DNA of 64,000 bases from Phallusia mammillata (Eukaryota), in contig OZ281495.1 in assembly GCA_965637545.1 (NCBI GenBank), positions 26,474,001-26,538,000 on the forward strand, in the 5' to 3' direction. Numbering within the stretch: the first letter of the stretch is position 1; each line of letters starts with the position of its first letter. This document shows, in pieces, positions 32,135 through 53,900 of this stretch. The notes under the pieces are model-generated. The model saw only the letters and a list, made by a program, of their open reading frames with translations, was not told where the DNA came from and did no database searches. A program made the translations under genes and the position numbers.

Positions 32135-34261
32135 ACCCCCCACAACGAGCCCCACACATCAGAACGGGACGATAGCGTCGCTATGAGGGAAATACCCAAA
32201 GTCCCCTTTCATACTGTGACCTATCAGTGTCCATTGAGGTTCGCGTTCGACAAAAACGCATCGATTTTAGCTGTATTCTTTAACTCGCGTTTCTTGCATA
32301 CACTATCCAGGTCTCTGCCGCTTAATATGTATATTATATAAATATATATTGGTATGCATTTAAGTGACTGCATTACCGGGCTGACAGCGTTTTCTACATT
32401 GTACACCACTGCTCATAGCAGGTGATCTTCTACTTGTGCATTGTGATTTTATGCGTCCTTGACTATGGGTGGCGACTTACATAACCTACGCTATAATACT
32501 TGAACTCGCATATATTCCACTTACAAACAACAGCATTTTTTGTGCCATTCCGTACAGTAAATGAATCTGATTTATCATTCCACTAACTTAACACTGCTCC
32601 ATTCCACACCCGAACCAACCTTAATGTACTACAAATATGTATTTTCTCAGTGTAAATGTAGTTGGACTTTTGCTACGCGTTTTTAACATTATTCCCCGGT
32701 AGAGCTATCAGTATGCGTAGAAGGCATCGCGTATTAGACTGGCAGTATTTTAAAACAGCGTTAAACCTTAAATACTTCCAAACGAAATTTGCACGAAATA
32801 CCTGGAGCCTATAAAACACCCCCTTTTTTGCTGTATCAATAAGCACAATTTGTAACATATCAAATTTGCACTGCTACTTGGGATATACACCACAGCGCGA
32901 ACTGCTTTAGCCTTGCAATCATTCTTTGTGTTTTCTTATGTGGCCTAATTTTGTGTAGTGCCCGCGTTATAACTTTAATATCGCTTGTGCCTGGTTGTCG
33001 CTTTTGCATCGTCCCTTTTCTTTTTCCGCGTCTTGTTTTAACTTTGCCTTGACAACGATTCGCGCCGTGTCAGCGCCCCCTATCGCTCAGAGGAATGGGA
33101 ACTCGAAAAACAAACGTTCCCCTAAAAAAAATTGTCAAGAGTGTATGTGGCAGAATAAAAAGGAAGCAGAAAAACAAATCAAAATTAGAAATGCTACAGC
33201 GCATTCATTTCTTTTTTAAATCCGTTCAAACATTTAAGTCTAAAACTAGTCGAGACTGCAAATTAAGCCTTGTTTTTTTAGAAACTTGGTCACACTTTAT
33301 GTCTTCGATGCCGTTTTGGTAGATTAAACAAAATGTTAGAACCGAAATGTTATCAGGATTTTGTATCGACCAGCCGTACATCACCAAAAACACATTATCA
33401 GCCATCAGTTAACCAAGAGGACTTCCCGCTATTCTAAACAGCAGTCTTACTGTAGCATAAAACTTTTTAAGGGGGGCGTAACAGATCCTCCAACAGAATT
33501 GTGCAACATCATTTCCTTGGCATGTGAAAATCAAAAAATTCGTGCCATTTTTACGGATCTGACGTTGTTTACTTGCCAACGTGACTTTAGATCAGTGGCT
33601 TTCATACGTTTGAGGCTTGCGGCACACAAACCTTTTCTTTGCGTGGGACGCTTTGCAGACTAAAACACTGGTTCCATCATTTGGCAGGGATTTAGGCCTT
33701 CGTTATGAGCCTTGATTGCAGAGTCTCAAGCCTTTCGCATAATTAAATGAGCAGTCTCGGGTTTGAGATCAGGTTATAACAGGTTCTTGGGTTTGTTGGC
33801 AAGGTTAATAATACCACACAATTACTAATTCCCGTACTGGCAAAAAAAGTGTGAAACACTACCACGTCCACCGAATTCATGATCTAGCTAGGCCTGTGCT
33901 TAATTGTGCTGTTATGTTTCTCGAAGTTGGTCGACTAAAAAGTCTTATACATCGCGTATTTTGTTGCAAACATTTTAACCATTTGACTTTGTTATGCGGC
34001 CTTTTTAATTCTTACGAATTATACCAGCAACTTCCAAAAAGTTAACTGGATTTGCGATGATTCACAATTCACAAAATCAAATGCAATGCAATCTAAAAAG
34101 CCGATTTGTTTATCTTTTAAGTTCGTTTGCACATTATATGCCCGACTCCAATTAGTAAGATAAAGAAGAGAAAATCACAAATTATCGACAAACTTTTGCA
34201 ACCAACATCCGTCTTCTTGTGCTTGGTTTCTATGAACTTGCCTTTTTTCTATTTCACGTAA

Positions 34262-34306
34262 TCACGTGACAAAGCGCCAGATGTAAATGAATGTTTCTTC
34301 TTTCTT
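34262..34306 (+). promoter_or_regulatory. Core promoter: E-box TCACGTGAC plus TCT/5'TOP-like pyrimidine initiator
   Basis: TCACGTGAC at 34262-34270; ttCtttctt with C at 34300 fits the TCT initiator YC+1TYTYY; followed by a good donor AAG|GTAGGT at 34363/34364. Confidence 0.55.
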
Positions 34307-35647
34307 GACCTTTCGGAGCTGGTGTTGACATCTCGTTGGAGCTGTGCGCGAATCTATGAAAAGGTAGGTGAAGCGGTTTTGTTGAAATTTAATTGCAAAA
34401 TTTGTGTAAGAAAGGCATTTTACCTGGATTTAAACGATTGGAGAACGCTGTAATTTTTAAGTAAAAAATATATTTTGTATTTTAAGTAAAAACACTTGTG
34501 AACGCAATAAAAGTTTGCTTAAGATTTGTCAGAAACAAAGTATTTTTAGCGCGGTTATAATAATAACGTTAGGGGATGTTTATACGTTGTCAGTCAAAGA
34601 TTGGTAAGCAGTCATAGCCCACATTTTTTCCGAGCAAAATCTAATCAACCAGAAAATCAAGCTTTTAATTACAGTTTCGTTGCGTAACATGTTGTCGTAA
34701 AAATTAAATGATTAACTGAATATGAATCTTGTAAAATAGCTTCTTCGGTAACATGGGTAATGCTTTAGCAAGATCTTATCAAATCAAGCTTTCAACAATA
34801 GGCAAGTTCTACATTTCGTTCCTCTGTGACATAACAATGCCACGTTGTAAACGCAATTCCCGATGCGTGCTGTTTTCAGGCGATCGGCGCTTTTTGCTGA
34901 TAACCGCGCCAGTTGCGTTCCTAGCCTTTCAGAATTCAGTTGTTATAGTTTTGTTGTCGGCAGCATAGAAAAAAGAAAGAAAACCTAATTGCTTATCCAC
35001 AGTTACTTGAACTGTTTCAGATTGTGCTGGTATCAGAATGCTTCTGAATTTAGGCTGCACAAGATCCGAGTTTTTCAATGCTGATGGCCCAACTACAATG
35101 AACGGCATTTGCTGTATGATTTGCATGCCATCAATGTAAAAGTAAGTTGTTTTACTTATTTTTAGACGTTCTAATTTTTGTGACAAGTCTTTGTCAGCTT
35201 AAAAACATGTGCGTTTGCAAGCATGCTATTTTTTCAACTTACGTGCAGTTTATAACTTAAGTATGCCAACTGAAAATAGTTGTATAAATAGTTGATGTTT
35301 TGTGTTTTTGTTAGGTCAATTAGTAAAATTGGCAAGAATTCATGTAGGCCTACCTTTTGTGTTTCCGCTATACAGCCTTGTCTGCATTGTTGTAAAATAA
35401 ACATCAGTCGAAAAAAATTGAAGAAATAGTTAAATTGTTAGTTGTGGGGTTAACTTGACAATGGTCTTAAGTTTAGACATCAAGTATCAATTTGGGGAGT
35501 TGTTTAGTACATTATAGATTTGAAGGATGTGTTTTTACAGAATGTGCATTAAAACATTATTTGTGTGTATAAAGTGGTTGTAAACAAAAACTTACAGGGG
35601 GGGAATTACTTTAATTTAATCAACAACGTCAGTCAGGCCCCAACATT

Positions 35648-35822
35648 TCTTGCGCAATAATCGTCATCCAATCCACGTGTTGCATAAATGACGTAACGAT
35701 TCCTGGTATGCGCAGGGCAGTCACGTGACAAATTATGCCAATCATCTGATTCTATTTGCTCACGCAGAAACAAGCGCTGATTGAATTTTTTGTAATCCAG
35801 GTTGATTGCGAGACTTTTGCGT
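35648..35822 (+). other. Conserved intronic module, copy 1
   Basis: Shares ordered motifs with 37015-37181, including the identical 25-mer TGGTATGCGCAGGGCAGTCACGTGA. Confidence 0.85.
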
Positions 35823-37014
35823 GCCTTCGGTGTTAGCTACCGATTAAATGTGATCATGTTGGTCCCTTTTATTCTAAACTGAGTAATGTACATCGTGGGT
35901 TCGTGGCTATGCATTTTAATAAAAACAAACAAAAGCAAACTAACGTTAAAAATTATGTTGCGCACCGAACTTCCTATCATTAAGGTGGTTTAAATAATTT
36001 TGTGATCAAACATTGTATGTAGGCTACTAAAAAGAAATAATACATAATAAAGTTGCTTATCCTTTTGATGATTTCCCGGCGGTTTCTCTTTAAATGACTT
36101 TGATATTTTGGTGCTTAGTAGGTAAATAGCACCATTTTGCAACTAACGTTATTATTATTATTTTTTCAGGTTAAGCTTCTTCAATGGAAGTGCTTCGAAC
36201 GATAAATCGACATAAACGTCAAGTCGCGTATACATTCTACTGCTCCTGGCAAAGACTAGCTACGACATCTATAATAAAGGTAAGCTTTCGTTTGCCTGTG
36301 CAGTATCTGTCGTTTTGATGTGTTACCAACTAAGCCGTAATATTGTTTCGGGAATCAGATAATTGTTCAGCGATTTGACATTGCCCACAGCTGCTTTATG
36401 TTTTGTTTTGTTAACAGTAAAAATACTGGATGCCGGTATACTGGATTTTGTCGTGTGCTAAACCAAGCTTTAAAGCTTTGTGTTTATCATTGTAGTTAAT
36501 CATACCACAAAACAGGTAAAGTGTATATTGGTCAGTGTGTTGTTGTCGATGGTCTTCAAGTCATTGGTGCCGAGTTTTCATATTTGTCCGTTTGGTAATT
36601 GCATTTCTTTATGTTAAGAACATTATTTTACTTGTAAATGGTGCTAAGTTGACTCTGAAAACTAGCCGGCCGCAACGTTTAAGTCATGTGGTTTTTGCTT
36701 AGTTTGGATAAAAGTAAGAATTGTCCGAAAACTGGATGCTTAAGCTTTTGTATGTTGTTCGCTAACGCTTTGTTTTAACTATAGCAGAAAGTAATTAAAA
36801 CTTATGATTATAAGTAACTAAAGTAGTTAAATTGTTAATTGTTTGTTGGAATTGCAGTGTTGTTGAATTCGGGCACTTAATATCAATTTTAAAGTTGTTT
36901 TGTTATGTTGGGCTTAAATGTTTGGCACTCTGTCTGACCATTAGAACAGATTTTGTGAAAAAATATATCGGGTGGCTTTATTTAAACCAATAACTCTATT
37001 TAAACGTCAAAAAG

Positions 37015-37181
37015 TCTTGCGCAATCTTCTGCAATTCACGTGTACCTTAAGTGACGTAACGAAGCTTGGTATGCGCAGGGCAGTCACGTGATAAATTAAC
37101 CCAATCATCTGATGATATTTGCTCACTTAACTCGCTGATTGCTGTATGCACATATTTCGGACTGATTGCAAGATTTTGCGT
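37015..37181 (+). other. Conserved intronic module, copy 2
   Basis: Paralog of 35648-35822: motifs conserved, spacers diverged. Confidence 0.85.
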
Positions 37182-40100
37182 CTCCTGTGTGACCTACTAA
37201 TCATAACAGGTCACCACGTTTGCGTGCGTCTTCTCGTTCTTGAGCATTGCAAGTAGATCGTTTATTTATGCTTTAATTGCCAATTCCCAAGTATGATGTA
37301 CCGAATTTAAACCGTTCTGAAGATGGCAAAATGACTGCTTTGCTTTAAAAATTAGTCACTGTATTACCGTAGCAAAATTGTTAACAAGTCTATTTTGAGA
37401 CACTTGCTGTTGTAAACTTTATTTCAAACACTATCTCGCTAAACGTTTAACGTATTGCATCACAGTTAAAAAGAATGATAAAAAACTGATGCCATCTATA
37501 AAAAGTTGTCTTGTAAAATAACGATATGTGAATTCTAACTTACCACATTGTTTACAGAATACACCTGTCCTCGTCAACAAAATATGCACCAGATGCGGAT
37601 CACCATCATACACCAAGGACAGTCGAAATGTGATTGCCATACGTACATGCGCATTTTTATGAACTTAGACTGCAAAATCACACCTTAATTTCAACTGGAC
37701 CTTCAGAGCGATTTCATATGCGTACCGGTATTATCGTGGAAGACTTGAAATCACGACGTTACCACGGTCAACCAACACCCACATTCATGGACAGCCATAT
37801 ATCGGCATTATACGCAGTAGACTGACACCATGATGTGGACGCATTGTGGACGGCCAAGTACAATGCATTGTGGACGGTCAAGTAGTTGCCGTACGTGCGT
37901 CGGCATTACACGCCATGGACTTGGACTTCTTGCGCTTGACATATTGACTTATATTGTACGCGGCGGTTTGTTAGTTACGAATTGTAATTGCAGTCGCACA
38001 AGTTACAAGTTGGTCAAGCAGTAACAGAAACAGCTCGAATAAGTGCAGTTGAAAACTGTTAAGGTAGCCTAACTCTTAGATTGAGACAAAAGTTATTAGC
38101 AAAGCTGGAATTCAAATTTAGAAATAAAACAGTAGCCCAGAAAGGAGTTGCGCATTCAGTTGATTTTTCCGAATATTGAGTAGTTTGTGACGTTCATCGA
38201 TTTTGGTGTTGCGTGATGTTTCTCGATCACTGAAACCAGTGCATGGTTTCGGCGTTTGGGAATTCCCCTCTACATGTTAACTTGCGCAAATGCCCCCAAA
38301 CCCCCAACACCTGGTTGTTCAACGTTGTACCTGCGTATTCGTGTTACAAGACTGTGCACAGTTCTGTAATGCGAACGGTATTCCGAAAAGTTGCTCTGTT
38401 TGTGCATAGTTTTAGACAGTTCGGTTGAGTTGAAGTAAGAAAGAAGGCAATAGTATAGTGAGGTATTATTAACAGCGGTTTTAGTTTATTTGTGTGATTG
38501 CAATTTGTTTTCTTGTGAAACGCTTCTTTGTAAAACCCTAGAGAATCCTAATGGTAAATTGCTTTGCATATTAGTTCCCGCTTTGATCATATTGTTGTTA
38601 CAATGTTGATATGGTATATTTTAAAATGCAACGCCTTTTGACGGTTATTGCCTTCAAAGCAAGTGTTTGTCTGTGCTGGACTGTATTGGGAAAAAGCCGT
38701 TTACCGTTGACTGGAAATGAATTGGATTTATAACAAGCTTTTACAATCATGTAACGACTGAAAATAATTTACATAACGTAGTATTGTTCATAATTACGTT
38801 ACCGGGTCTGAAAATGCATAATATTCTGTTTGATTTTTGTATTACAAAAACATTATATTTATTACGCAGCGACGGCTGACGAAAAAATTTGTATACTGAA
38901 AATTTATATTGATTTGTGGTGCTGTATTTTGTTTTCTTGGCAACCCTGCGATTGCTGTTCTTAAAGCAACGAACCTAAAAATTGTAATATTGTGAAAATT
39001 GGCCCTTTTACCACCCAGCGACGGCTGGAGATAGTTTTTAAGACGCAGCGATTGCTGACGATAAATGGACGCCCCAAAATGCACGTCGCTATTTTATTGT
39101 CATTTGAATTCGTCATGAAGCTGCTGTAGTTGAATTGTAAATATGTCCGCTTTCATAACTCCCCGTCGACTGGATATTACTCAAAATGCAGCGTTTATTA
39201 GCTGCATATCATTGTATTGTGTTGATTTGCTTTTTCGAAAGGCACATTTCACAAAAACTGCCTTTTTGCCAACGACGTTAGGAAATAGTTTTCAAACTCA
39301 GCAACAGCTGACGTAATAGTAACAAACCTTAAAAGTGCACGTTTGTATTTTGTGCTGCATAAAACGGCTTTTTGCTACCCAGCGACGGCTGGACGTAACT
39401 ATACGCTCCCCTCGTGTGTTTTTGTGTTCGCAATAACCTGTTGCTATTGTCGCATTATGAATCAATCGGTGTCGTGCATCACACTTAAAAGTAAGTACCC
39501 GTGTTGCAAGTCAAAAACCCTGGGCATTTTTTTATTTGGCTATTTTTACCTTCAGGCAGATGCACGATGGAAATGACGTCACCAACGGTTGCCATGGGAA
39601 CCTGTTGACATTCGGCCGGGAGGGTGGGTCCTTTCGATGAATCGCAAACTTCGGGTGGTAAGTTATGTTTTTTGTTGTTTTCACAGCTCGTGTCTTGTTT
39701 GCTGTTGCCTTTGATCAAAAGAGAAATGATGTCAGAATGCATTTGTTTCTTTGTTGTAAATATAGTCCTTTCTGCCTCAATCAAATCTATCATACCAAGA
39801 TAAATTCATAAATTCGGCCGTACATGACTTCGGTTTCAAAATTAATTCAATTTTCTATCTCCAGAGAAAGCTGTCTGATGCATCGAATGCCGTACTCCTA
39901 GAAACCGGAAAACATCAGCTGAAATCCTGATCCGCAGCACATGGCCTCCTGTGATGCAGCAATTACAAAACAGGTTTGTAAATTTCACTTTTTTGGAACA
40001 AATATTACCCAACTCGCTGTAACACTAAAGAGCACATTAACTCACAGCGTTATTTAAGACTGTAATCACTTTCGCAAGTCTTAGTGAAATACGCATCTTT

Positions 40101-42442
40101 ACTAAGGCGGAATTTTCGAATAAAATGCTACTCCAGCACTTTTCTAAAAAAGTTTTATCGAATCCAGAGTACTGAATCCTATTCTGTTTAATCCTATCAT
40201 CGAGTTGGACTTTTTGGATTTGTATAGTTAAGGAATTAAATCCCCACTTAGATGTTCCAAATTGCACTTTTCCAAAAAGTAAACTTGTCATTTTTTTCTA
40301 CAGGTTACCACAATAACACGAACAGACAAAAGCACGTGACATGACGTACCACGGTTTATTCGTTCTCTGGGTGAAGATGATGGAGGCTAAACGTAAGTTT
40401 ATAACAGCACACACTCCTATTTCTGTTTAACAATAGCTTTGTTCAGTACAAAGTAGATGAAGCAAACAGTAAAATATTTCTATGTAGGTTTCCATTTTTT
40501 CATTGTAGTTTTCCATTTAGTTTTGATAAACGGCAATTTAAATTTCGTTGGACTAACTGGTTTGTTTTGTGCAGGCGAATCGGATTTTCCTGCTGTTGGG
40601 ACCTTAGTACGTCTACATCGACACTGAAAACACCCACCCCAAAAGCTTCAAGGTACGAACTACCAAAAATAATTCTGCGCAATCTTTTTCCCAAGTTGAA
40701 AGCCAGCATGCAGTTCAAACGATTAGCCGTTTTGCAGTTTCTTCTTTTTTTTTGCTTATCTGATACAACTTTGGCTGCAAAACGATTCCTTAAAAAACTG
40801 CATCGTCAAGGGCCATACAATCTTCTTAACAAAACAGTTGTCTAACACAACTATCACACCGAAGTCGTTTAAAAGTGTTTAATCACATAAACCCCAGCTG
40901 GCTGTAATACAACAGTGTAACAAAACGTTGGCATTTTCTAATTTTCTTCTCTGTTTCAGATTCTTCATATCCATCAACTCGCCTTCAAGTCTCCGTCCCG
41001 TTATCATCTACAAAAATACGGGATGTCAGTTATTGGTAGGAGGCTGCTGCGTTATAGTCAACATTGAATGCGAGATTTTCACCTATAGGCCCATAACTCT
41101 ATGCTAACTTGCGCTGGGCCTCCATTCGTCATGGTCAGGTCCAGCGGATTGGAGGCCCACGTCATTTTTGTTTTTTTTGGTGCTACAAATTAAGTCGCAA
41201 TTAAGTTTATATGTAGTTGTAGCACCGATAACTAGGGGTAAGAATAGTTAGGCTGGGGCATTTTTGGGTTAGCGCGCCGCATTCCCCCTTAGTTATGGGT
41301 TTAGTTAGGCGCGGCGCGTTAAACTTTAGCGTTAAAACCTAGGGATAGAAACACGTCGCCCTCACCCACCCAGGCCCGCTGGGGGTCGATTCCACCGGAG
41401 TTTGATCCCCAGGAGTCAAAATTCCACCGGAGACTGGTACCGGTGCAGGCGGCCTCAGTCTCCCCTCATTTTTGGGCTGGAGAGGAAAGGTTCGCGAGCA
41501 CGCCGGCTAAAAATACCGTAAGGATGTTTTCAATTCCCCCCTAAAACTGTCTGAATTTGGGAGGGTCCGTCTTTGATGATGTCTTTTTCTGACCCTCTTT
41601 GATGATGATGTTGTTTGTCACAGTGTCCTAAATTTGTTTGCGGTCGCCTTTTTACACGTGGCACTTTCTCTGTCTTCCCTTGTCGTTATAAGCTTGAGCG
41701 CATTTTAACTGAGGGATTGTCGCTTGTTGTTGCACTGTTCCGTCGGTGCCGTGCATCTGTATTGGCTGAACGACCCACTCGCAGTTTATTCTTCCCTATG
41801 AATACCCTGGACTGCGGCTGGATTGCGATGTCATGCAGGTGCACACAATGTTCTTCGGTTGTTGTGGCAAAGCCTGCCACCCAGCGGATCTTGCAGCTCG
41901 TGTATTTTTCCACAGGTACTTTTATTTGCAGGTACATTTTTCCACAGGTTTTGTTCGTTTTTTATTCCATATGCTGTCTGCATATGTTATATTTTATTAT
42001 TAATATTATATTATATTATTACCTAACTACCCAAATCTCGCATTCCTTGTTGACTCGGTCGGATAAACCCATCTAAAAGCTCTGTTTGTTTCATAACTTT
42101 GCTTTTCGTGAGGTTTAAACTGCCAGGCGCGGCAGCCTCACATTTTACTTTTATAGGCTGCTGTTGAGAAGTCCAATAGATAGCGAGCTCAGAAGCTGTT
42201 TTTTCCTTGTTTTTGTTTGTGATCTAGTTGCGGCGGCATTATAGGGGCGCGCAGGACGATGGCGGTTCCACAAGTATGTTTGTGAGTTAGACTTAATAAC
42301 GTTAGGTGCAAATAGCACTGAAGAAGATGAACAACCAATCGTGTACGATTTGATAGGAGATCAACCAATCGCGTACCAGATGAACGAAGAACAATTTTAT
42401 AACTTAATTGAACACACGAGTGGCTTAAGCTTACTTTTATTT

Positions 42443-42968
42443 GACCACAACTAACCATTGGTGGTTACAGTTGTCCACGACTACATTTTAGTGGCAACAT
42501 GGTTACACAGGATTCAAAATAAAGTGACCTATAGGATGCTTTTGTGACTACAACTAACCATTGGTGGTATGGGGGAAATTGATATTACTGTTGTCCACGA
42601 CTAAATTTTAGTGGCAACTCGGTTTAGCTAAGATAAACGAACTACAACATTTACTCTGACAACAACTAACCATTGGTGGTTGCTTTTGCGAAAATGATAT
42701 TTTAGTTGTCCACGACTAAATTTTAGTGGCAACTTTATTTAGCAATCTTGAAAACAACATGAACGTTTTCTGTGACCACAACTAAACTTTGGTGGTTACT
42801 TTGAAACCTTTACTTAGTTGTCCACGAAAAACTTCTGGTGGCAACTTGGTTTAGCAGGTTTAAAAATAAAGTAACCGAAGTAATATTTCCATGACCATAC
42901 CTAAATATTGGTGGTTATTTCATGCAAAATGACATTTTAATTGTCCACGACTAAATTTTAGTGACAAC
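42443..42968. repeat. Array of 10 alternating palindromic repeats (A/B) with variable spacers, period 103-123 bp
   Basis: A = GACCACAACTAACCATTGGTGGT at 42443, 42546, 42658, 42774, 42893; B = GTTGTCCACGACTAAATTTTAGTGGCAAC at 42470, 42590, 42705, 42817, 42940. Confidence 0.92.
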
Positions 42969-43064
42969 ATACTGAACTGAAGTTAACAAACTAACCATCC
43001 TTTATTTATCACAGGAAACCAGCTTGTTTGAACTTTTACGCAGTTTAATATGCTGCTTGAAATA

Positions 43065-43178
43065 AGTAGTTTAGTATACTACTTGGATTTTGAACCTAAA
43101 AGTAGTTTAATATACTACTTTGAAATTAGAACCAAAACAACAAGGTAGTTTGATATACTACCAGAAAATTAGAACCTG
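43065..43178. repeat. Three copies of a hairpin-containing unit GTAGTTTRRTATACTAC...GAACC
   Basis: Copies start near 43065, 43101 and 43144. Confidence 0.8.
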
Positions 43179-43350
43179 ACTATTATAAAATTGTTTGTTT
43201 ATTGTGTAAAATCTTTCTAGGTTTAATTTGTTGTGTAATACACGTCGCGGTATAGGCGTTAACTCTTCCTTCCTTATTTGCTAAAAGTTGTTTAAAATTG
43301 GCAACCTAACTTAGATTATATTGATGTGAATGGGATGTGTTTGGATTTAT

Positions 43351-44673
43351 ATTCTCTCTAAATCGGCGCGGCGAATTTAGATCCAGTTTAGTTAATACTG
43401 CGAGCTGCTTCGTGGTTAAGTCAGCCAGGCAAATCGGGCCGCCATCGTCAGATGCTAGCATTTACAAGTACAGGGTCATAGTTACAGAGGCTGCTTGCAT
43501 AAGATCAAGGAATCTGATTTTGGAACGAGTTTTGAAGTTGAGCATTGTATATTGTTATGTGACGAACTAACACTGTTGTTTTGTTTTGCAGATGTATGGA
43601 AGATTGCAAAGGGGAAGCTGGTTATTTTGTATTCACGACTTTTTTTTTTTTTTTAGGTACGGCCCAAATGGCGAGGAATTTTGATGGAAAATTAGAAGGG
43701 TGAATAATAGTATAGTTTAAGCTCAAAAATTAATCCTATTTTTTATACACGATTGACACAAAACAAAAAACAAACAATGGAAAATTGTAATGGAGTATCT
43801 AATTATATCAAATGGAATCACAAAACAATAGTCAATCATATGGAGTATATATTGCTACGTAAGTGCACAGGTATCAAGTAGGCGCCCATTTGCAGAGATT
43901 TTTTTGGCAAATGGACCAGTGTTGTCTTCCTCGTCTCGGCCTGGTTCTGCGTCAGACGAGGGTCTCTCCACTGCCAACCAACGAGAGACCCACTGCGAGA
44001 GTTGGCACCTCGACGTGGTTCAGTGGCCTGATTTAGAACTAAGACCAACTCGCAGAACCCAAAATAATGCTTTAGAATTTCAATGTAAACAACAATAACG
44101 GATACCCAAAATTGTGCACAAATTAGTGCCCAGTGCTAATTGGTAAACCTGAAATTTGAACATGAAAAATGGTTTGTTTTGCAGAGTATTGAAGATTGTG
44201 TGGTTTGAAGGGAGGGTTATGCGTATTATTCAGTACAAATTGTGTAGTTTCACTAAATAAACTGAGATTTGTTAGCTGGGTTATAGTTTTATAAACCCAA
44301 ACTTGCTTACAACACCTTTCTGATCACATAAAACGGAAAATTGGACACATAAACTGACCTCCACCGTGTAATGAAAGAAATATGTGCAATATAGTCTTTA
44401 CGACTAATTCAAAAACGGATAAACAACAATTAGTTAAGACAGGTGGCTACATTAGGATTTAGTAAATCATTGGCGGGCTGCAAGTCTCAAATGATTGAAT
44501 TTGCTATTCTGATTGACCTCTTGTTTTGGGACCGAAATAATATGACCACAAAGTGCCGATATTTGCAAAGAGAAAGAAATCAACGCGATTATGTCGTCAC
44601 AAAGAGCGCAAAAGTCCTTGTTCATATCGACAAGTATTTTGATGATGAATTTAGGAATGTGACTACTGCAATC
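43351..44673 (+). repeat. Direct segmental duplication, copy 1 (~1.3 kb)
   Basis: Colinear with 45628-47025 (e.g. ccaggcaaatcgggccgccat, gagagacccactgcgagagttggcacctcgacgtgg, ggacacataaactgacctccaccgtgtaatgaa). Confidence 0.9.
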
Positions 44674-45627
44674 GGTTAGATGATTGTGTGCAGAAAGTTT
44701 TCGCGAGCCGCCCAAAACGTACCGACAGGACGCATGCGGCACGCGTGCCAGGATGAGTTATGACGTCATAAATTACCCGGTCTTGTTTCTTCATGCCTGC
44801 GCCCATGTAGTTTATGCTAGATTTGCACAAGTCAAAAATGATGCAAGGGCCACAATTAATGAACTGATTGTCGCAGGTTGCACGATATTATAGCTTGTAA
44901 AGTTTGTGCTATGAAATATCGTCTACATTCGACAGTGACTTAGAACTAAGAAATCCATTGATATGCCAGTGACAAAATCGAAATAAAATCATAAACTTCA
45001 AAAATTAAGTTTAGAGAAATGTCGACTCCCAAACAAACGTAGCTTATTAGTCACAGGATTAACAGATTCTACCAGACAATTACATATTGTGCGGAAACAA
45101 TACTACACAGTTGGAATGTTTTCGATAATACGTTATAGCTGTAAAATAATACCGATTTAAAATCGCAGTAACAAACCGAATAAACTTAAATCCTCTTCGC
45201 GGGTCGCATAAAGACAATACTCTGTAGAAAAGAGGCATGCTTCTATGAACGATAAAGAACCACAAAACTCGAAAATTCGAAAAACTGCTGGCTCATTGAG
45301 AAGTACCATTTTCGAAAGAGAAAAAGTATAGATCAGGCAGTGCATGTTGCCGTGGCGGTGGTTATTCCGCCGAATGAATGAGGCTGATTTGTGACATGAA
45401 GTTGCTGGTTTAAACACCACAAATCGACCCTGTTGGCTATGGCGTGTTAGCTCATGAGAAACTCTGTACCCAGGAAGGTCGGCACATTGTTCTCACCACG
45501 CTTGACTATCACTTAACTAAGTGCGGCGCAGTTTTATGGTTAGAAAGCTAATCTAGGTAATCTGCTTGCAAAAAGGTGCGTTTTACAGATAAAAAAGACA
45601 TAACCCATGGCACAAAGCCTTGATGCA

Positions 45628-47025
45628 ATTCCCTCTTTAAATCGGCGCTGCAAACTCAGATCCACTTTAGTTCTACAGAATACCGTGAGCTGCTTCGTGG
45701 TTACGGCAACCAGGCAAATCGGGCCGCCATGGTCAGAAGCTAGCATTTACAAGTACAGGGTCATAGTGACAGAGGCTGCCTGCATAAGACCAAGGAATCT
45801 AAATGCTGATTTTGGAACAAGTTTTCAAATTGAGCATTGTATATTGTTATGTGAACTAACACTGTTGTTTTGTTTTGCAGATGTATGGACGAAGATTGCA
45901 AAGGCGGGACTGGTTATTTTGTATTCACGACTAACGTTTGTTTCTGTTTTTATAGATGCGGCCCAAACGGTGAAGGATTTTTTATGGAAATTTGGAAGGG
46001 TGAATAATAGCATAGTTAAGCTCACAAATTAATCTTATATTTTTGTACACGATTGACACAAAAGAAAAAACAAACATGGAAAATTTTAATGGAATATAAA
46101 ATTAAATTGAATCAATCGGAATCAAACAATTGACATTCATTGGGATCATATGTGTTTACACGTAAGTTCAGAGGTATGATCTAGGCGTCCATTTGCAGTG
46201 ATATTTTTTTGGCAAATGGACCAGTGTTGTCTTCCTCGCTCGGCCTGGTTCTGCGCCAGACAAGGGTCTCTCCACTGCCATCTAACGAGAGACCCACTGC
46301 GAGAGTTGGCACCTCGACGTGGTGCAGTGGCCTGATTTAGAACTAAGACCAACTCGCAGAACCCAAAATAATGCTTTAGAATTTTAAAGTAAACAACGAT
46401 AAAGGATACCGAAAATTGTGCACAAATTTAGTTCCCATTCACTTTTAAACTAGCAAACCTGGATTTTGAACATGAAAAATGGTTTGTTTTGCAGAGCATT
46501 GATAATTGGGTGGTTTGAAGGGAGGGTTATGCGTATTATTCTACACTAATTGTGTAGTTTCACTTAAAATTTGTAAGCTGGGTTGTAGTTTTTTTAAACC
46601 CAAACTTGCTTACTACAGCATTCTGATCACATAAAAGGGAAAATTGGACACATAAACTGACCTCCACCGTGTAATGAATGAAACTGTACTTTTGTGCAAC
46701 CTCTTTTTTCTATTCTTACATTGGGAGCATTCGCAATGTGTGCAATATTGATTCTTAACAACTAAAAAAATGATAAACAACAATTAGTTAAGACAGGGTG
46801 GTTCAATACTTTAAAATAAAGGACTACATAAATATTTGCTAAATACTCGGCGGGCCGCAAGTGTCAAATGACTGAATTTGCTATTCGGATTGACCTCGTG
46901 TTTTGGGCCCGAAAAAATATCACTACAAAGTGCCAAAGTTTGCAATAAACAGAAAAAAATCAATGCGATTTTGTAGCCACAAAGAGCGCAAACGTGTTTG
47001 TTCTCATGTTTTGACTACTGCAATC
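45628..47025 (+). repeat. Direct segmental duplication, copy 2 (~1.4 kb)
   Basis: Colinear with 43351-44673, with small indels. Confidence 0.9.
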
Positions 47026-48544: not shown

Positions 48545-50408
48545 CTGCATCCGAATTTTAATTGCGCGAACCTGTATATCTAAATACACTGTATGACACA
48601 GATGCCTTTGTTAAATATTTGTTGCATTGATTGTTTTCACGAGAACATGAATATAAAGTGAAATTTGATTTTTTTATGATTGTGTAATAAATTAGATTGA
48701 GATAAATGTCAAGTGAGGGGGCATGGTAGGGTTATAACATGGGTCGTTTATTTCGAGTCAGATTAGGGTAATGTTGAAACAAATTCGTATTGAGGTTTAA
48801 TTTCAGGCTTGTATACTTTCAAGTTCAAGGCTCACAACTTTTAGTCTGTTTCTGTAAACTTATTTTTTCACGGGGTTCGAACCCAGGTCACCCCCGGGGA
48901 CGACTCCCCATCAGGGTTTTTATATCTGTATATGGGTCAGGCGCGCCAGACCAATTGCTATCACTAAGGGGGCGCTGAAGTATAATTGTGCGATTAGGGA
49001 GTTCTGGGAGAAGATAGAGCAGTTAAAACGAAACAAAACGACAAGTCATTTTGTCGGGCATTAAATATAGCAAAAAAACAACAAACATTACGATGAGCTT
49101 CAATAGGAACGGTGTTTGAACGTCACAATACACCGAGCGTTAACGTGAGATGCTAGGTGCTCCACTTAACAAAACAATTGCAGATTTGGCCCATTCCTGG
49201 TACCAAATTATAAAGCAAATGAGTACTTCCAGTAAAACATATAACAGAGAAAAAAAAACTGCTGTTTCAGGCGTTTATATTTGGTATACTTTTAACACAG
49301 GACAATGTATATGTTAACATTTTTGTCATGACAAAATAATTCACGTAACACAGTCTTAATGGTTACAAGCACCGATCACAAATTTTAGGATTCTTTAATG
49401 GAGCCAAGATGACTTTCGAAATTTGAAAAAAGGCCTCATATTTTTTTTTCGAAAACCGTGTCAAAATTTCGGGTTTTCGATTCCGGTTTAAACCGGTGTG
49501 GAGGTTCGCTAGGAGGCAAAAACCGACCAGAACCAGTTTGAAACTGGAATATTTCGTCGAAAACTGACCCAAAACCGGATTTTTCTTCGATTTTTTGACC
49601 CCGAAAATCGAAAAAAGGAAAGGCTATAGCCTTAGGGTTTTTTCGAAAATCGGGTCAAAATTTCGGGTTTTCGATTCCGGTTTAAACCGGTTTGAAGGTT
49701 CGGTAGGAGGCAAAAACCGGCCAGAACCAGTTTAAAACTGGAATATTCCGGCGAAAACCCACCCAAAACCGGATTTTTCTTCGTTTTTTTTACCCCGAAA
49801 ATCGGAAAAAGGGAAAGGCTTTTTCGAAAATCGGGTCAAAATTTTGGGTTTTCGATTCCGGTTTAAACCGGTTTGAAGGGTCGGTAGGAGACTAAACCGG
49901 CCAGAACCAGTTTGAAACTGGAATATTCCGGCGAAAACCCATCCAAAACCGGATTTTTCTTCGTTTTTTTGACCCCGAAATTCGAAAAAAGGGAAAGGCT
50001 ATAGTCTTTGGGTTTTTTCGAAAATTTCCCACCCAAAACCGCATTTTTCTTCGATTTTTTGACCTCTGAAATTCGAAAAAGGGAAAGGTGATAACCTTAG
50101 GTTTTTTTCGAAAATCGGGTCAAAAATTCGCGTTTTCGATTCCGGTTTAAGCCGGTTTGGAGGTTCGGTTGGAGGCTAGAACCAGTTTGAAACTGGAATA
50201 TTCCGGTTTGAACCGGTTCAAACCGGTTTGGAGGTTTGGTAGGATTATAAAACCCTACTTTAAGTTGAACTCCGTCTGATTTATTCCATAGCTATAAATG
50301 ATGGGTCATTTCGATGTTTTCGCGACAAAATTATGTAATAAATATTCAACAAAGGGGCATCAAGTTTGTTTAGACATGCAGGTTGGTGCAATTAAAATTC
50401 GGATGCAG
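48545..50408. mobile_element. Long-TIR (foldback-like) non-autonomous element
   Basis: CTGCATCCGAATTTTAATTGC at 48545 is the exact reverse complement of the 21-mer ending at 50408; imperfect inverted similarity extends ~100 bp; no TSD identified. Confidence 0.75.
49445..50245. repeat. Tandem satellite, ~180-195-bp unit, about 4 copies
   Basis: Recurrent tttcgaaaatcgggtcaaaatttcgggttttcgattccggtttaaaccggtt...agaaccagtttgaaactggaatattcc near 49445, 49640, 49820 and 50105, plus a partial unit at ~50015. Confidence 0.93.
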
Positions 50409-50939: not shown

Positions 50940-53900
50940 TTACAATTGAGTGCTTTCGACCACGCGCTGCTCAATAACATCTCCAAGCTCAAAAGACCTG
51001 GTGCTAAACCCGCCGTCCAGCGATATGTTTCTGATTGCTATGAGTTCAATATTGGCTTCCAGCGGTTCCACTGTGGTGGTAGCTTGCTTAAATCTATGTT
51101 GTAGCGAGCCAGTGACGTACAGCTTGCGGATATGACCTCTGCACCGTCGTGTGACCTTCAATAACGTCTCCCAGAGGAAATTGGAGTAAATCCACGGATT
51201 GACAGCGCTGTTGACTGGAATTAGAAAGGCTGCTGTAACGCCGTACATGATAGAAGGAATTTCGACGCCAGCAAAAGACACGAACGATGTGATGCATATC
51301 GGGACCCAGCACACCAGGTTGCTGGCAATCAGTCGAACTATCCTGCCCCAGATTGCGTCGTTTTCTTTTGCTCGTTTGTCCACATGAACTTTGTCGTTGT
51401 GATTTCGAGGCGTTCCTATTGCTGAAACAATATACTTTTATTTACATTTCACTTAAGAAAACCTAATAGCCATCTTCGCTACTTAAAACAACAAGCAACC
51501 TATTGAGTAGTAAAGTAAAAAGTAAAGCCCAAAACAATAATTTTACTGTGACTCGTGAATATTTAGTATACTACTAGTCTATAGAAATGAACAAATGCGC
51601 ATAAGTGGTAAAAATGACCAACTGCAGTTTACAAATGAAATATTCCAAGCGAACATCCTAATTGAATACTGTGTTTTGTAATTCCACACCCACACCCAAA
51701 CAGGGAACTATGAAAAATTCCATTAGTTTTTGCTGTAATTTGTGCTTCAGTTTCAAACAGAGTATAAAACGGTTGGATGCCATGTATACCCGGTTGCATC
51801 GCCGAAGCTGTTTCGAAGTAAATCACGGAGTAGGCAATGATCATAAAGACGATGGCAACACTATCGAAAACCATGATAGTGAGGGTGTACGTTGCATTGG
51901 GTTCATCTAAGCTGCCGTAAAATCTGCTAACAAGAGTAAACAGTAAAACAGAAGTGTATGCATCACTTCGTTAATTTTTCCACCAGAAGGCACTACTGAG
52001 TTATATCAGGTGTCTTAATACAAGTAGGGACTTCTAGGTTATGATGGACTTTTGTTTGTTTTAGGTTATGATGGAAAAAAGGAAGTTTGTGACCGAAAGC
52101 GATGTTTCCCGTTACATGATAGTTTCTGAACAATCTAATTTTGTAAACTCTGTGTTTATCGCAAGCCGAAAAGCAATGACCTGCAAAACTCACCGTGGCA
52201 GACAAACACCGTCAGAACCATAATACCCGATAGAGCGAATTTCCTGGTTTTTACAAGCCGCGGGAAAAATGTTGCAGAATTCTGCTGGAAGATCGTTGAT
52301 GTTCCCGTCAACGTTGTATGCCACATTGCTTAGATTTGAGGCGGAGGAAAGTGACCGTGCTCTATCTACGACCATGTGTAACTGATGAACTGTTAATATG
52401 TTTTTGGTGATGTACGGCTGGTCGATGCGAAAACCGGATATCATTTCGGATCGCATGACCGGCAAACTTCCCACTCCGAGCGAAGCAATCCACATGACAA
52501 TCATGGAAACGGCAATGTATCTACAACGTATTACTTTGGCCTTGAACGGACTGATAATGCCGTACAGACGATACGCCGTCATTGAAGCCATCACCAGTAC
52601 AGATGACTGGCTCGACACGTTGGCCAAGACGCCCAGAGTCTGGCAACGTCTTCCTGCCAGCCATTCCAGCTTTTCTTTACAATAGATGTCGCCAAAGCCT
52701 GCATTATAGGATCCAAGGAGTAGCAAATAGATTCCCATCATGAAATCTGCTAAAGCTAAGTTGAGGACAAGGATCTTATTGCCAACTAGTATCCTGTCGG
52801 ATGCATGTCCATAGCGTCGTCGCATTTTCGAGGCTAAGTCATATGCCATGTTGCCTATCACTGCCGAGTTCCCAAACAAGGAGAACAGACACATAATCCA
52901 CACCCAAGCGACCATTACATTCCAGGCTATAAGGTGTGTTGGAGAAGATAGGATGTCGTTATCTTGCGAGCATTCGTCTCTGAAGTCTTTGCAGTCAAAT
53001 TTACCATCTCCAACCTGGTATAGTCTGATATAGCGCTCACTGATGTCCGTTCGGTCACAGTAGAAGTGGTCACTGCAGTCCATCTCGTCGGCCGAGTTAT
53101 CACAATTTGCGTTGAAGTCACATCTAAGAAAATGGTGTTTGGAACTTTGTGTGTTATATATTGTACGTTTTTTGAATAAATTGATTATAGCCTATTTAAA
53201 GTAAGGTATTTTATAATTGATCTGCTTTGAATTTTATTAAATTTAAGGTAACTGTATTTACGCTAATAAAAATGCACTTGGAATATTTTTTTTCTATTTA
53301 TTTTTATTGGCAACAGGATAAACCTAAAAGTCACATAGCCACGGCATTAAAGATGTCGAACTGTCATTTATTGCCGACATTTCAGTGGTGTCTTCCCATT
53401 AAGAGGTAAAGCCATTTGGATTTTGTTAGTTTACACTCAATACATCAAACCGAAGCAACAATACATAAAATAATTCATCTTTCACCGGTAGGAAGCATCA
53501 AGTCCAAAGTGTTTAGGGCCACTCAAAGGGTTTATTCAGGCCTTGCTTATAGAAAATGTTTTTATTATTATTATAGATCTGTTGTCAGTTCCTTATTCAA
53601 ATAGAAACTATTTATGTTGTTTAGGTAATAAAAACATATCACCGGAAAACCTATTGTTGAAAGGGTTGATTTCAATACAAACGGCACTTATCCTAGTATC
53701 AAATCTACATCTTCTCAAACCCAAACATGACTTACTGAAATTGTTTATAAAAGCTTTGAGTTGAATCTTTTCCACCACAGGCAATTTTTTTCGAGCATAG
53801 CTCCAAGGATTCATCCGCACCGTCTGTACAATTAGCCTCGTCTTCCCGGCAAAAACAATCAACCTGGCCGTTGCACAGATACCTGAGGTCCAGCGTAGAG

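Follow-up and report, generated by a model that had tools for sequence, protein, structure and literature searches.

The window, by which we mean the whole 64,000-nt stretch of Phallusia mammillata DNA analysed here, contains an array of ten palindromic repeats in which two motifs, A and B, alternate strictly five times, each at the position given by an earlier, sequence-only reading of this DNA (Table 1). That reading had also described spacers alternating between short and long, which holds for the array as a whole (A-to-B spacers of 4, 21, 24, 20 and 24 nt; B-to-A spacers of 47, 39, 40 and 47 nt), except that the first A-to-B spacer measures 4 nt rather than 3 nt. Both motifs fit CCAC-R-ACTAA-N3-T-(T/A)-R-GTGG, and the common core proposed for them is borne out by six occurrences of CCACRACTAA in the window against 0.39 expected. 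All motif copies have an identical orientation, on the plus strand, which is also the strand of the structured terminal module located downstream. Tandem Repeats Finder did not call the array in the window, since its units are too diverged. When the five ~115-nt units were aligned in MAFFT and the motif and spacer columns were scored pairwise, the motif columns were 88.3% identical (459 of 520 pairs), whereas the spacer columns were 48.7% identical (269 of 552), with 144 gap pairs. Divergence is therefore clearly unequal, which is not the pattern of a plain decaying satellite, and the spacers are, as had been claimed, far more diverged than the repeats. The same alignment confirmed that the traces of shared ancestry among the spacers are real and, along with the comparison of paralogues, supported the view of an old tandem array whose ~115-bp unit is a dimer of A and B. 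The further suggestion that only the palindromes are constrained agrees with our observation that the motifs are held much more strongly than the spacers, both within the window and between paralogues. Judged from these alignments, the array is genuine, and selection acts on its motifs.

Table 1. Features of the array and its surroundings (window positions), and array loci in the genome.
Feature	Position	Strand	Remarks
Pyrimidine-run (TOP-like) start and first exon-like block	34294..34363	+	followed by GTAGGT donor-like site
46-nt exon-like block	42228..42273	+	pyrimidine tract-TAG before, GTATGT after; contains GACGATGGCGG
Two 30-bp direct repeats	42329..42388	+	each with CAACCAATCG (CCAAT-box-like)
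Array	42443..42968	+	5 x (A 23 nt, spacer, B 29 nt, spacer)
A copies	42443-65, 42546-68, 42658-80, 42774-96, 42893-915		
B copies	42470-98, 42590-618, 42705-33, 42817-45, 42940-68		
AACTAACC branch-site-like word, pyrimidine tract, CAG	42989..43014	+	acceptor-like end of the array-bearing interval
Hairpin mini-array	43040..43161	+	four copies of G(C/T)AGT-loop-ACT(G/A)C
Second ACTAAC word, pyrimidine tract, CAG acceptor-like site	43566..43591	+	in 7/7 copies
Short intron-like interval	43859..43919	+	GTAAGT to CCAG; U-rich tract inside stem
Structured terminal module	43920..44063	+	terminal-exon-like; conserved more strongly than any other part of the unit
Partial second copy of 43320-44083	45628..46388	+	includes second terminal module 46171-46364
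Array loci	C1:30.52M, C1:34.03M, C2:26.516M (window), C3:26.794-26.805M, C4:19.578M, C6:3.30-3.33M, C6:21.489M, C8:17.77M, C8:18.115M		

A degenerate A pattern matched 116 times in the 240-Mb genome, while a reversed-pattern control gave 0 matches, and all 116 fall in ~10 paralogous loci on six chromosomes and nowhere else. In its usual form, found at seven loci, the array comprises 10-20 copies of a 41-42-bp unit (A plus a U-rich spacer of 18-19 nt, with a consensus close to TAYTTTGGGATTTTTGGT; hereafter the 41-bp form) and closes with a single A and a single B, separated by a 24-nt spacer. The window copy is atypical, in that this terminal A-B dimer has been amplified five times, and the arrays at C1:34.0M and C3 represent intermediate forms. 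The loci hold from 5 to 21 motifs each, with higher-order repeats and array-specific variants, and variant units are also common to different loci. At the paralogous loci the array always sits between the 46-nt exon-like block and the acceptor-like site at 43014. Head-to-tail units of 41-42 bp, a copy number that differs between loci, higher-order repeats and homogenisation within arrays are found here as in other minisatellites located in genes, and the array is a variable tandem-repeat (minisatellite) segment of a multicopy plus-strand unit that lacks a conserved ORF. It differs from ordinary minisatellites in that a 20-nt core is nearly invariant across old paralogues as the remainder decays, and in that the position and orientation of the array are fixed within a conserved unit. 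Between paralogues, identity amounts to 0.87-0.93 in the motifs versus 0.75-0.78 in the spacers (0.92 versus 0.78 when 41-bp arrays are compared between loci), and the A consensus is unchanged at loci whose flanks share only 66-91% identity.

The spread of copy numbers, the higher-order repeats, the variant units common to several loci and the well-kept spacers of the 41-bp form would all be expected of a functionless minisatellite, the similarity of which stems from recent amplification and gene conversion with no selection. We consider this explanation quite improbable, since conversion or recent origin would homogenise motif and spacer alike, whereas in the window the motifs stand at 88% against 49% for spacers with many indels. 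Moreover, the last B is 93% identical across paralogues, exceeding the average of the unit, and the C6 paralogues keep the motif core although their terminal module is only 75% identical. On the sequence comparisons, the array can be described as a minisatellite internal to the gene copies of a small paralogous family, with a putative function at the level of either RNA or DNA.

The composition of the motifs bears on both of these readings. Among 108 A copies, CCA, A, CTAA and TTGGTGG are invariant, with A at position 8 in 74% and C at position 13 in 71%, and complete ACTAAC occurs in only ~70% of the A copies; among 26 B copies, CCAC, ACTAA and GTGG are invariant together with the outer GTTG/CAAC, and the word reads ACTAAC or ACTAAA. 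The invariant TTGGTGG thus lies outside the branch word, whereas positions 8 and 13 vary. As RNA, the stem of A measures 5 bp and closes a loop of 12 nt, that of B measures 8-11 bp, and the hairpin loop opens with R-ACUAA-C/A, the same word as the branch-site words of the neighbouring introns. The array folds better than shuffled sequences on both strands, slightly more so on the plus strand (z of -3.5, versus -2.7 on the minus strand). Changes inside the stems yield G.U over A.C at about 2:1, which is weak evidence, and the motif stems display almost no compensatory change, their conservation being one of base identity. A U-rich tract without AG comes after every motif of the 41-bp form. A-type arrays as a whole are nearly AG-free (3-9 AG dinucleotides observed, 23-45 expected), a scarcity that does not count as independent evidence because it results largely from the copying of one AG-free unit; the first AGs of these arrays appear at the closing A-B pair, and the window copy itself is AG-rich. 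Since each 41-bp unit presents a branch word and then a U-rich tract with no AG, it resembles a 3' splice site minus its AG.

That the motifs can fold, and that the array folds better than shuffles, would also suit a cluster of small-RNA hairpins or a CRISPR-like memory of repeats and spacers, and the sequence-only reading had indeed called the array CRISPR-like and had thought of hairpins processed into small RNAs. Both ideas now appear extremely improbable. Drosha and Dicer substrates require far longer stems (~22 bp or more in miRNA-like hairpins) than the 5 bp of A and the 8-11 bp of B, and Rfam yielded no gathering-level match in the window and nothing relevant at E up to 10 in 40800-44300 or at E up to 1 in 33500-42300. 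The array does share with CRISPR arrays the alternation of partly palindromic, conserved repeats of 23-29 nt with less conserved sequence. However, two repeat types alternate here, the spacers (4-47 nt) are mutually related and recur in paralogues, and the host is a 240-Mb animal genome with contigs of chromosome scale, in which we found no cas-like genes, no adjoining protein genes and no long ORFs within several kb of the array. Since the 18-19-nt spacers are themselves repeated in the paralogous arrays, which are 41-42-bp minisatellites, no resemblance to CRISPR is left.

What the sequence-only reading had lacked is the multicopy, apparently spliced, non-coding host gene of the array. At all the array loci, the homologous flanks correspond to window positions 40916-42433 (left of the array) and 42968-44083 (right of it). 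The paralogy with C1:30.5M is patchy and reaches 34227-34369, which includes the TOP-like start and the first donor-like site; homology with C8:18.1M reaches 34754, and C3:26.80M has matching upstream patches. The paralogous segment, fullest at C1:30.5M, therefore measures ~9.8 kb, from the TOP-like start to the terminal module. The 46-nt block is identical, together with its flanking splice-like signals, in seven of seven aligned copies, and is represented genome-wide by nine close copies and one diverged copy. The paired CCAAT motifs noticed earlier beside the array are present as CAACCAATCG boxes at 42332 and 42362, the first kept in 6/7 and the second in 3/7 paralogues. The acceptor-like site at 43014 is found in 7/7 copies, with a degenerate branch word in C1:34.0M, and a third acceptor-like site of the ACTAAC type, near 43661, is retained in the seven copies as well, save that the window copy has lost the branch word; at the 43014, 43591 and ~43661 sites, all on the plus strand, 20-25 nt separate the branch word from the AG. 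The donor-like GTAAGT at 43859 is likewise kept in all seven copies (as GTGAGT in one of them, so that the donor consensus is preserved), and a donor-like GTAAAT near 43282 is kept in six of the seven and lost from the window copy. In diverged relatives the short intron-like interval at 43859-43919 retains its donor and acceptor words, and the letters of its stem change yet still pair. In a distant family member we found a comparable layout, in which small A/T-rich exons are combined with GTAAGT donors and the ACTAAC branch word again stands before an acceptor. Conserved splice-like signals were found on the plus strand only.

The second hairpin mini-array reported near the array is also there (Table 1), with two to four copies in paralogues; between its copy 1 and copies 2-4 we observed a compensatory change from C-G to U-A (GCAG/CUGC to GUAG/CUAC). 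Its first hairpin (43040-43056) resembles the stem-loop IIa region of U2 snRNA, with an identical run of 11 nt; a U2 snRNA gene or pseudogene at this position was rejected, as Rfam gave no U2 match at E up to 10 in 40800-44300. Within the same unit, the 11-mer GACGATGGCGG at 42255-42265 (plus strand) has its exact complement at 43439-43449, 1.2 kb downstream with the array between them; the two are invariant in seven copies, and one inverted 11-mer per 3 kb is expected by chance. Additionally, a 23-nt inverted repeat (41056-41078/42033-42055, 91% complementary) spans ~1 kb of the conserved left flank, and its right arm is kept in 7/7 copies.

Across the paralogues, no conserved ORF was found on either strand of the unit. 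A 51-aa minus-strand ORF at 43306-43461, conserved-looking and with an in-frame 6-nt indel, was discarded since it is broken in four other copies by stops, frameshifts or loss of the ATG. The partial second copy of the 3' part of the unit (Table 1) was considered as a 5'-truncated retrocopy, an idea that we rejected, because it belongs to a local tandem duplication of ~2.3 kb (43320-45627 and 45628-~47930), which takes in the 3' part of the unit together with downstream non-unit DNA. Taken by their sequence signals, these features suggest that the unit is probably a spliced, non-coding gene on the plus strand with the array in an intron between 42273 and 43015, and we infer that this host gene starts at the TOP-like promoter at 34294 and ends in the structured terminal exon.

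Dispersed copies on six chromosomes, with kilobases of shared flank, and hAT-like ORFs 3-8 kb from two of the array copies might instead point to the internal or subterminal repeats of a non-autonomous transposable element, in which the motifs would be sites for a transposase or recombinase, as proposed in the sequence-only reading. Several observations make this very doubtful. No terminal inverted repeats join the ends of the unit, the only long inverted repeat (41056/42033) being internal; no transposase-like ORF of at least 110 aa lies inside the unit at any locus; and the array occurs at only ~10 loci. Where upstream sequence is available, homology starts at a promoter-like position and extends to a terminal exon-like module; beyond 44063 it fades gradually over tens of bases with no sharp end. 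Conservation along the unit is also very uneven, ranging from 68% to 100% within one copy, which would be impossible under the neutral decay of a transposon and argues for selection, or for conversion confined to functional parts. The hAT-like ORFs in question, which are long and on the minus strand (L040 826-2319 and L046 5939-7164), look by eye like relics of hAT/ZBED-type transposases.

Copies of the terminal module are 91-100% identical, versus 66-91% in their flanks (43860-44063 compared), and three copies are identical across the module even though the flank of one matches those of the other two at only 68%. When 12 diverse copies were folded to a consensus, 96.9% of cells paired and seven pairs proved to be altered on both sides; 0 of 500 shuffles attained the covariation score, and slid controls were far lower. 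Several helices need G.U pairs, which on the other strand would be A.C, and so are compatible with the plus strand only. Since the helices of the module both covary and need G.U pairs, transcription of the plus strand is supported. The covariance-model match in the window spans 43868-44060. Two other proposals for the module were dismissed: a coding exon is ruled out by indels of 1, 3 and 4 nt between subfamilies, and the changes in a long-range helix of GGTTCTGCG with CGCAGAACC are uncompensated.

Genome-wide, the covariance model recovered at least 56 strong full-length copies of the module (140-205 bits), a lower bound, as 150 of many first-look candidates were scored. The 46-nt block and an array go with only ~10 of these copies; the remainder are mostly found within ~1.5 Mb of a contig end. 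On the five contigs of known length, and at the left end of every contig, about 25 of 30 copies face the nearest end. In four diverged copies, the shared sequence is limited to the module and to the short intron-like interval that precedes it. Rfam, searched with 40800-44300 at E up to 10, contains nothing similar to the module. GCCATCGTCAG was noted ~170 nt before a distant copy of the module (L064 ~1330), and in L065 (1800-2050, minus strand) more than 12 tandem units of 18-19 nt, each reading as a pyrimidine tract and CAG followed by GT in the manner of splice sites, lie upstream of a diverged terminal module.

The array family appears to sit in satellite-rich, subtelomere-like neighbourhoods. 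A satellite of ~196 bp follows the terminal module at a distance of 2-5 kb in four paralogous loci (the window, at 49443-50204, L039, at 690-6434, L040 and L041), and occurs also in L042 (1207-1735, upstream of the array) and L044 (162-370). At C6:3.296-3.326M (L044, L045), a 5.2-kb tandem unit repeats a truncated array, the terminal module and an ORF whose translation has, by eye, the look of a fibrinogen-related or intelectin-type domain; just one unit of this tandem retains the 46-nt block. The window also holds, at 50943-51437 on the minus strand, an exon-like ORF of 165 aa with a C-terminal motif of the seven-transmembrane-receptor type (NPxxY-like).

The conserved palindromic motif looks like a docking site, and the question is at which level it would act. 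Our preferred reading, held tentatively and at a probability of roughly 0.4, is that the array may be a variable repeat located in an intron and made up of pseudo-3'-splice-site hairpins, to which branch-site and pyrimidine-tract factors would bind, giving it a role at the RNA level. The motifs would act in the transcript, each as a short hairpin with a CCAC/GUGG stem displaying ACUAAC or ACUAAA in its loop, and the U-rich, AG-free tract that is added in the 41-bp form would turn each unit into a pseudo-3'-splice-site module. Such modules could bind SF1/BBP or another STAR protein, U2AF and U2 snRNP. Possibly they would titrate branch-site and pyrimidine-tract factors, or else they would equip the intron with numerous distant branch points, every one of them using the first AG downstream; either outcome would control the splicing or the retention of the host RNA. 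This reading is favoured by splice-like signals that are kept on the plus strand only, by the ACTAAC word shared with the acceptor-like sites and by the AG-poor arrays. It is weakened by the incomplete ACTAAC in ~30% of A copies alongside the invariance of TTGGTGG, which is no part of a branch site, and by the window copy, which is rich in AG and has no donor-like GTAAAT near 43282. Moreover, conservation of the motif by base identity would suit a sequence-specific DNA-binding protein equally well.

That base-identity conservation, together with a period of four helical turns, makes an array of DNA sites the main rival, even though we regard it as somewhat unlikely. Under this explanation the motifs would be phased sites for a sequence-specific protein, forming an intronic enhancer, silencer, insulator or chromatin-organising element, and the earlier proposal that A and B are protein-binding sites is plausible in itself. 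The motif is conserved by the identity of its bases rather than by pairing, CCAC and GTGG half-sites stand at a fixed 12-bp spacing, the 41-42-bp period corresponds to ~4 turns of B-DNA, as would suit phased sites, and CCAAT boxes adjoin the array. Furthermore, GACCACA in the motif fits RACCRCA, the Runx consensus, and CCAAT is present on the minus strand of A; we treat both as leads only, which favour DNA sites. However, the C6 paralogues, which retain the rest of the motif, have lost the CCAAT word of A, and B has neither CCAAT nor the Runx word. Since the motif is absent elsewhere in 240 Mb, the factor would have to be one without other strong sites of such form, and the splice-like context of the plus strand, the scarcity of AG and the identity with the branch word would go unexplained.

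Several known systems resemble what the pseudo-3'-splice-site reading proposes. In the Gomafu/MIAT lncRNA, tandem UACUAAC repeats bind SF1 better than ordinary branch sites do and slow splicing in vitro (PMC3116199). Like Gomafu, the array presents an optimal branch-site word several times in a single orientation, though complete in only part of its motif copies, within what would here be a non-coding transcript. Gomafu, however, carries a handful of bare heptamers in an exon, whereas here 10-21 copies are embedded in a palindrome of 20-29 nt that is probably intronic; they form a regular tandem repeat of 41-42 bp or ~115 bp in a multicopy gene, and SF1 is a candidate binder. Distant branch points with AG-dinucleotide exclusion zones are known as well (PMC1431707). 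The likeness lies in a long AG-free stretch with branch-site and pyrimidine-rich sequence upstream of a 3' splice site; the examples described so far involve a single distant branch point or a few of them, in contrast to up to ~20 putative branch-site-like modules in tandem here. A third relative is provided by the sno-lncRNAs, which act as a sponge. Our array has in common with them the intronic RNA of a non-coding host-like gene and many copies of one short word, and differs in the binding word, in a putative accumulation of the intron and in the lack of snoRNA ends, none of which was found in the unit by Rfam searches of the window and of the regions covering 33500-44300. Sno-lncRNAs are intron-derived lncRNAs with arrays of Fox-family sites (PMC4234469).

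Arrays of DNA sites offer parallels of their own, also for the side-by-side occurrence of different short repeats that is seen here. The gypsy element has 12 Su(Hw) sites, and human subtelomeric promoters carry 61-29-37-bp repeats. With these the array shares evenly spaced copies of a conserved site, arranged as a short tandem repeat close to a promoter or 5' region; it differs from them in having no known factor or transposon context and in a motif that is confined to one gene family.

Returning to the RNA-level reading, a more far-reaching version of it may be considered, in which the array is a sink or timer for SF1, U2AF and U2 snRNP inside a multicopy lncRNA with a TOP promoter, or else an intron with up to ~20 alternative distant branch points, and is in either case linked to subtelomeres; we judge this version unlikely. 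The terminal exon, previously undescribed, would then be common to at least 56 telomere-pointing loci near chromosome ends, and the family could couple the capture of splicing factors to a subtelomeric RNA system. If the RNA reading is true, the array would represent an independently built invertebrate counterpart of the lncRNAs with arrays of splicing-factor sites, of unusually regular architecture (one motif in one orientation, 5-21 copies, ten paralogues), and would provide a natural system in which to see how one intron with many branch sites is handled. If the DNA reading is true, it would point to an unknown factor whose 20-bp site serves the array-bearing gene family alone. Either way, a false lead to an 'animal CRISPR' is removed, and a family of structured RNA modules with a striking subtelomeric, telomere-pointing distribution is uncovered.
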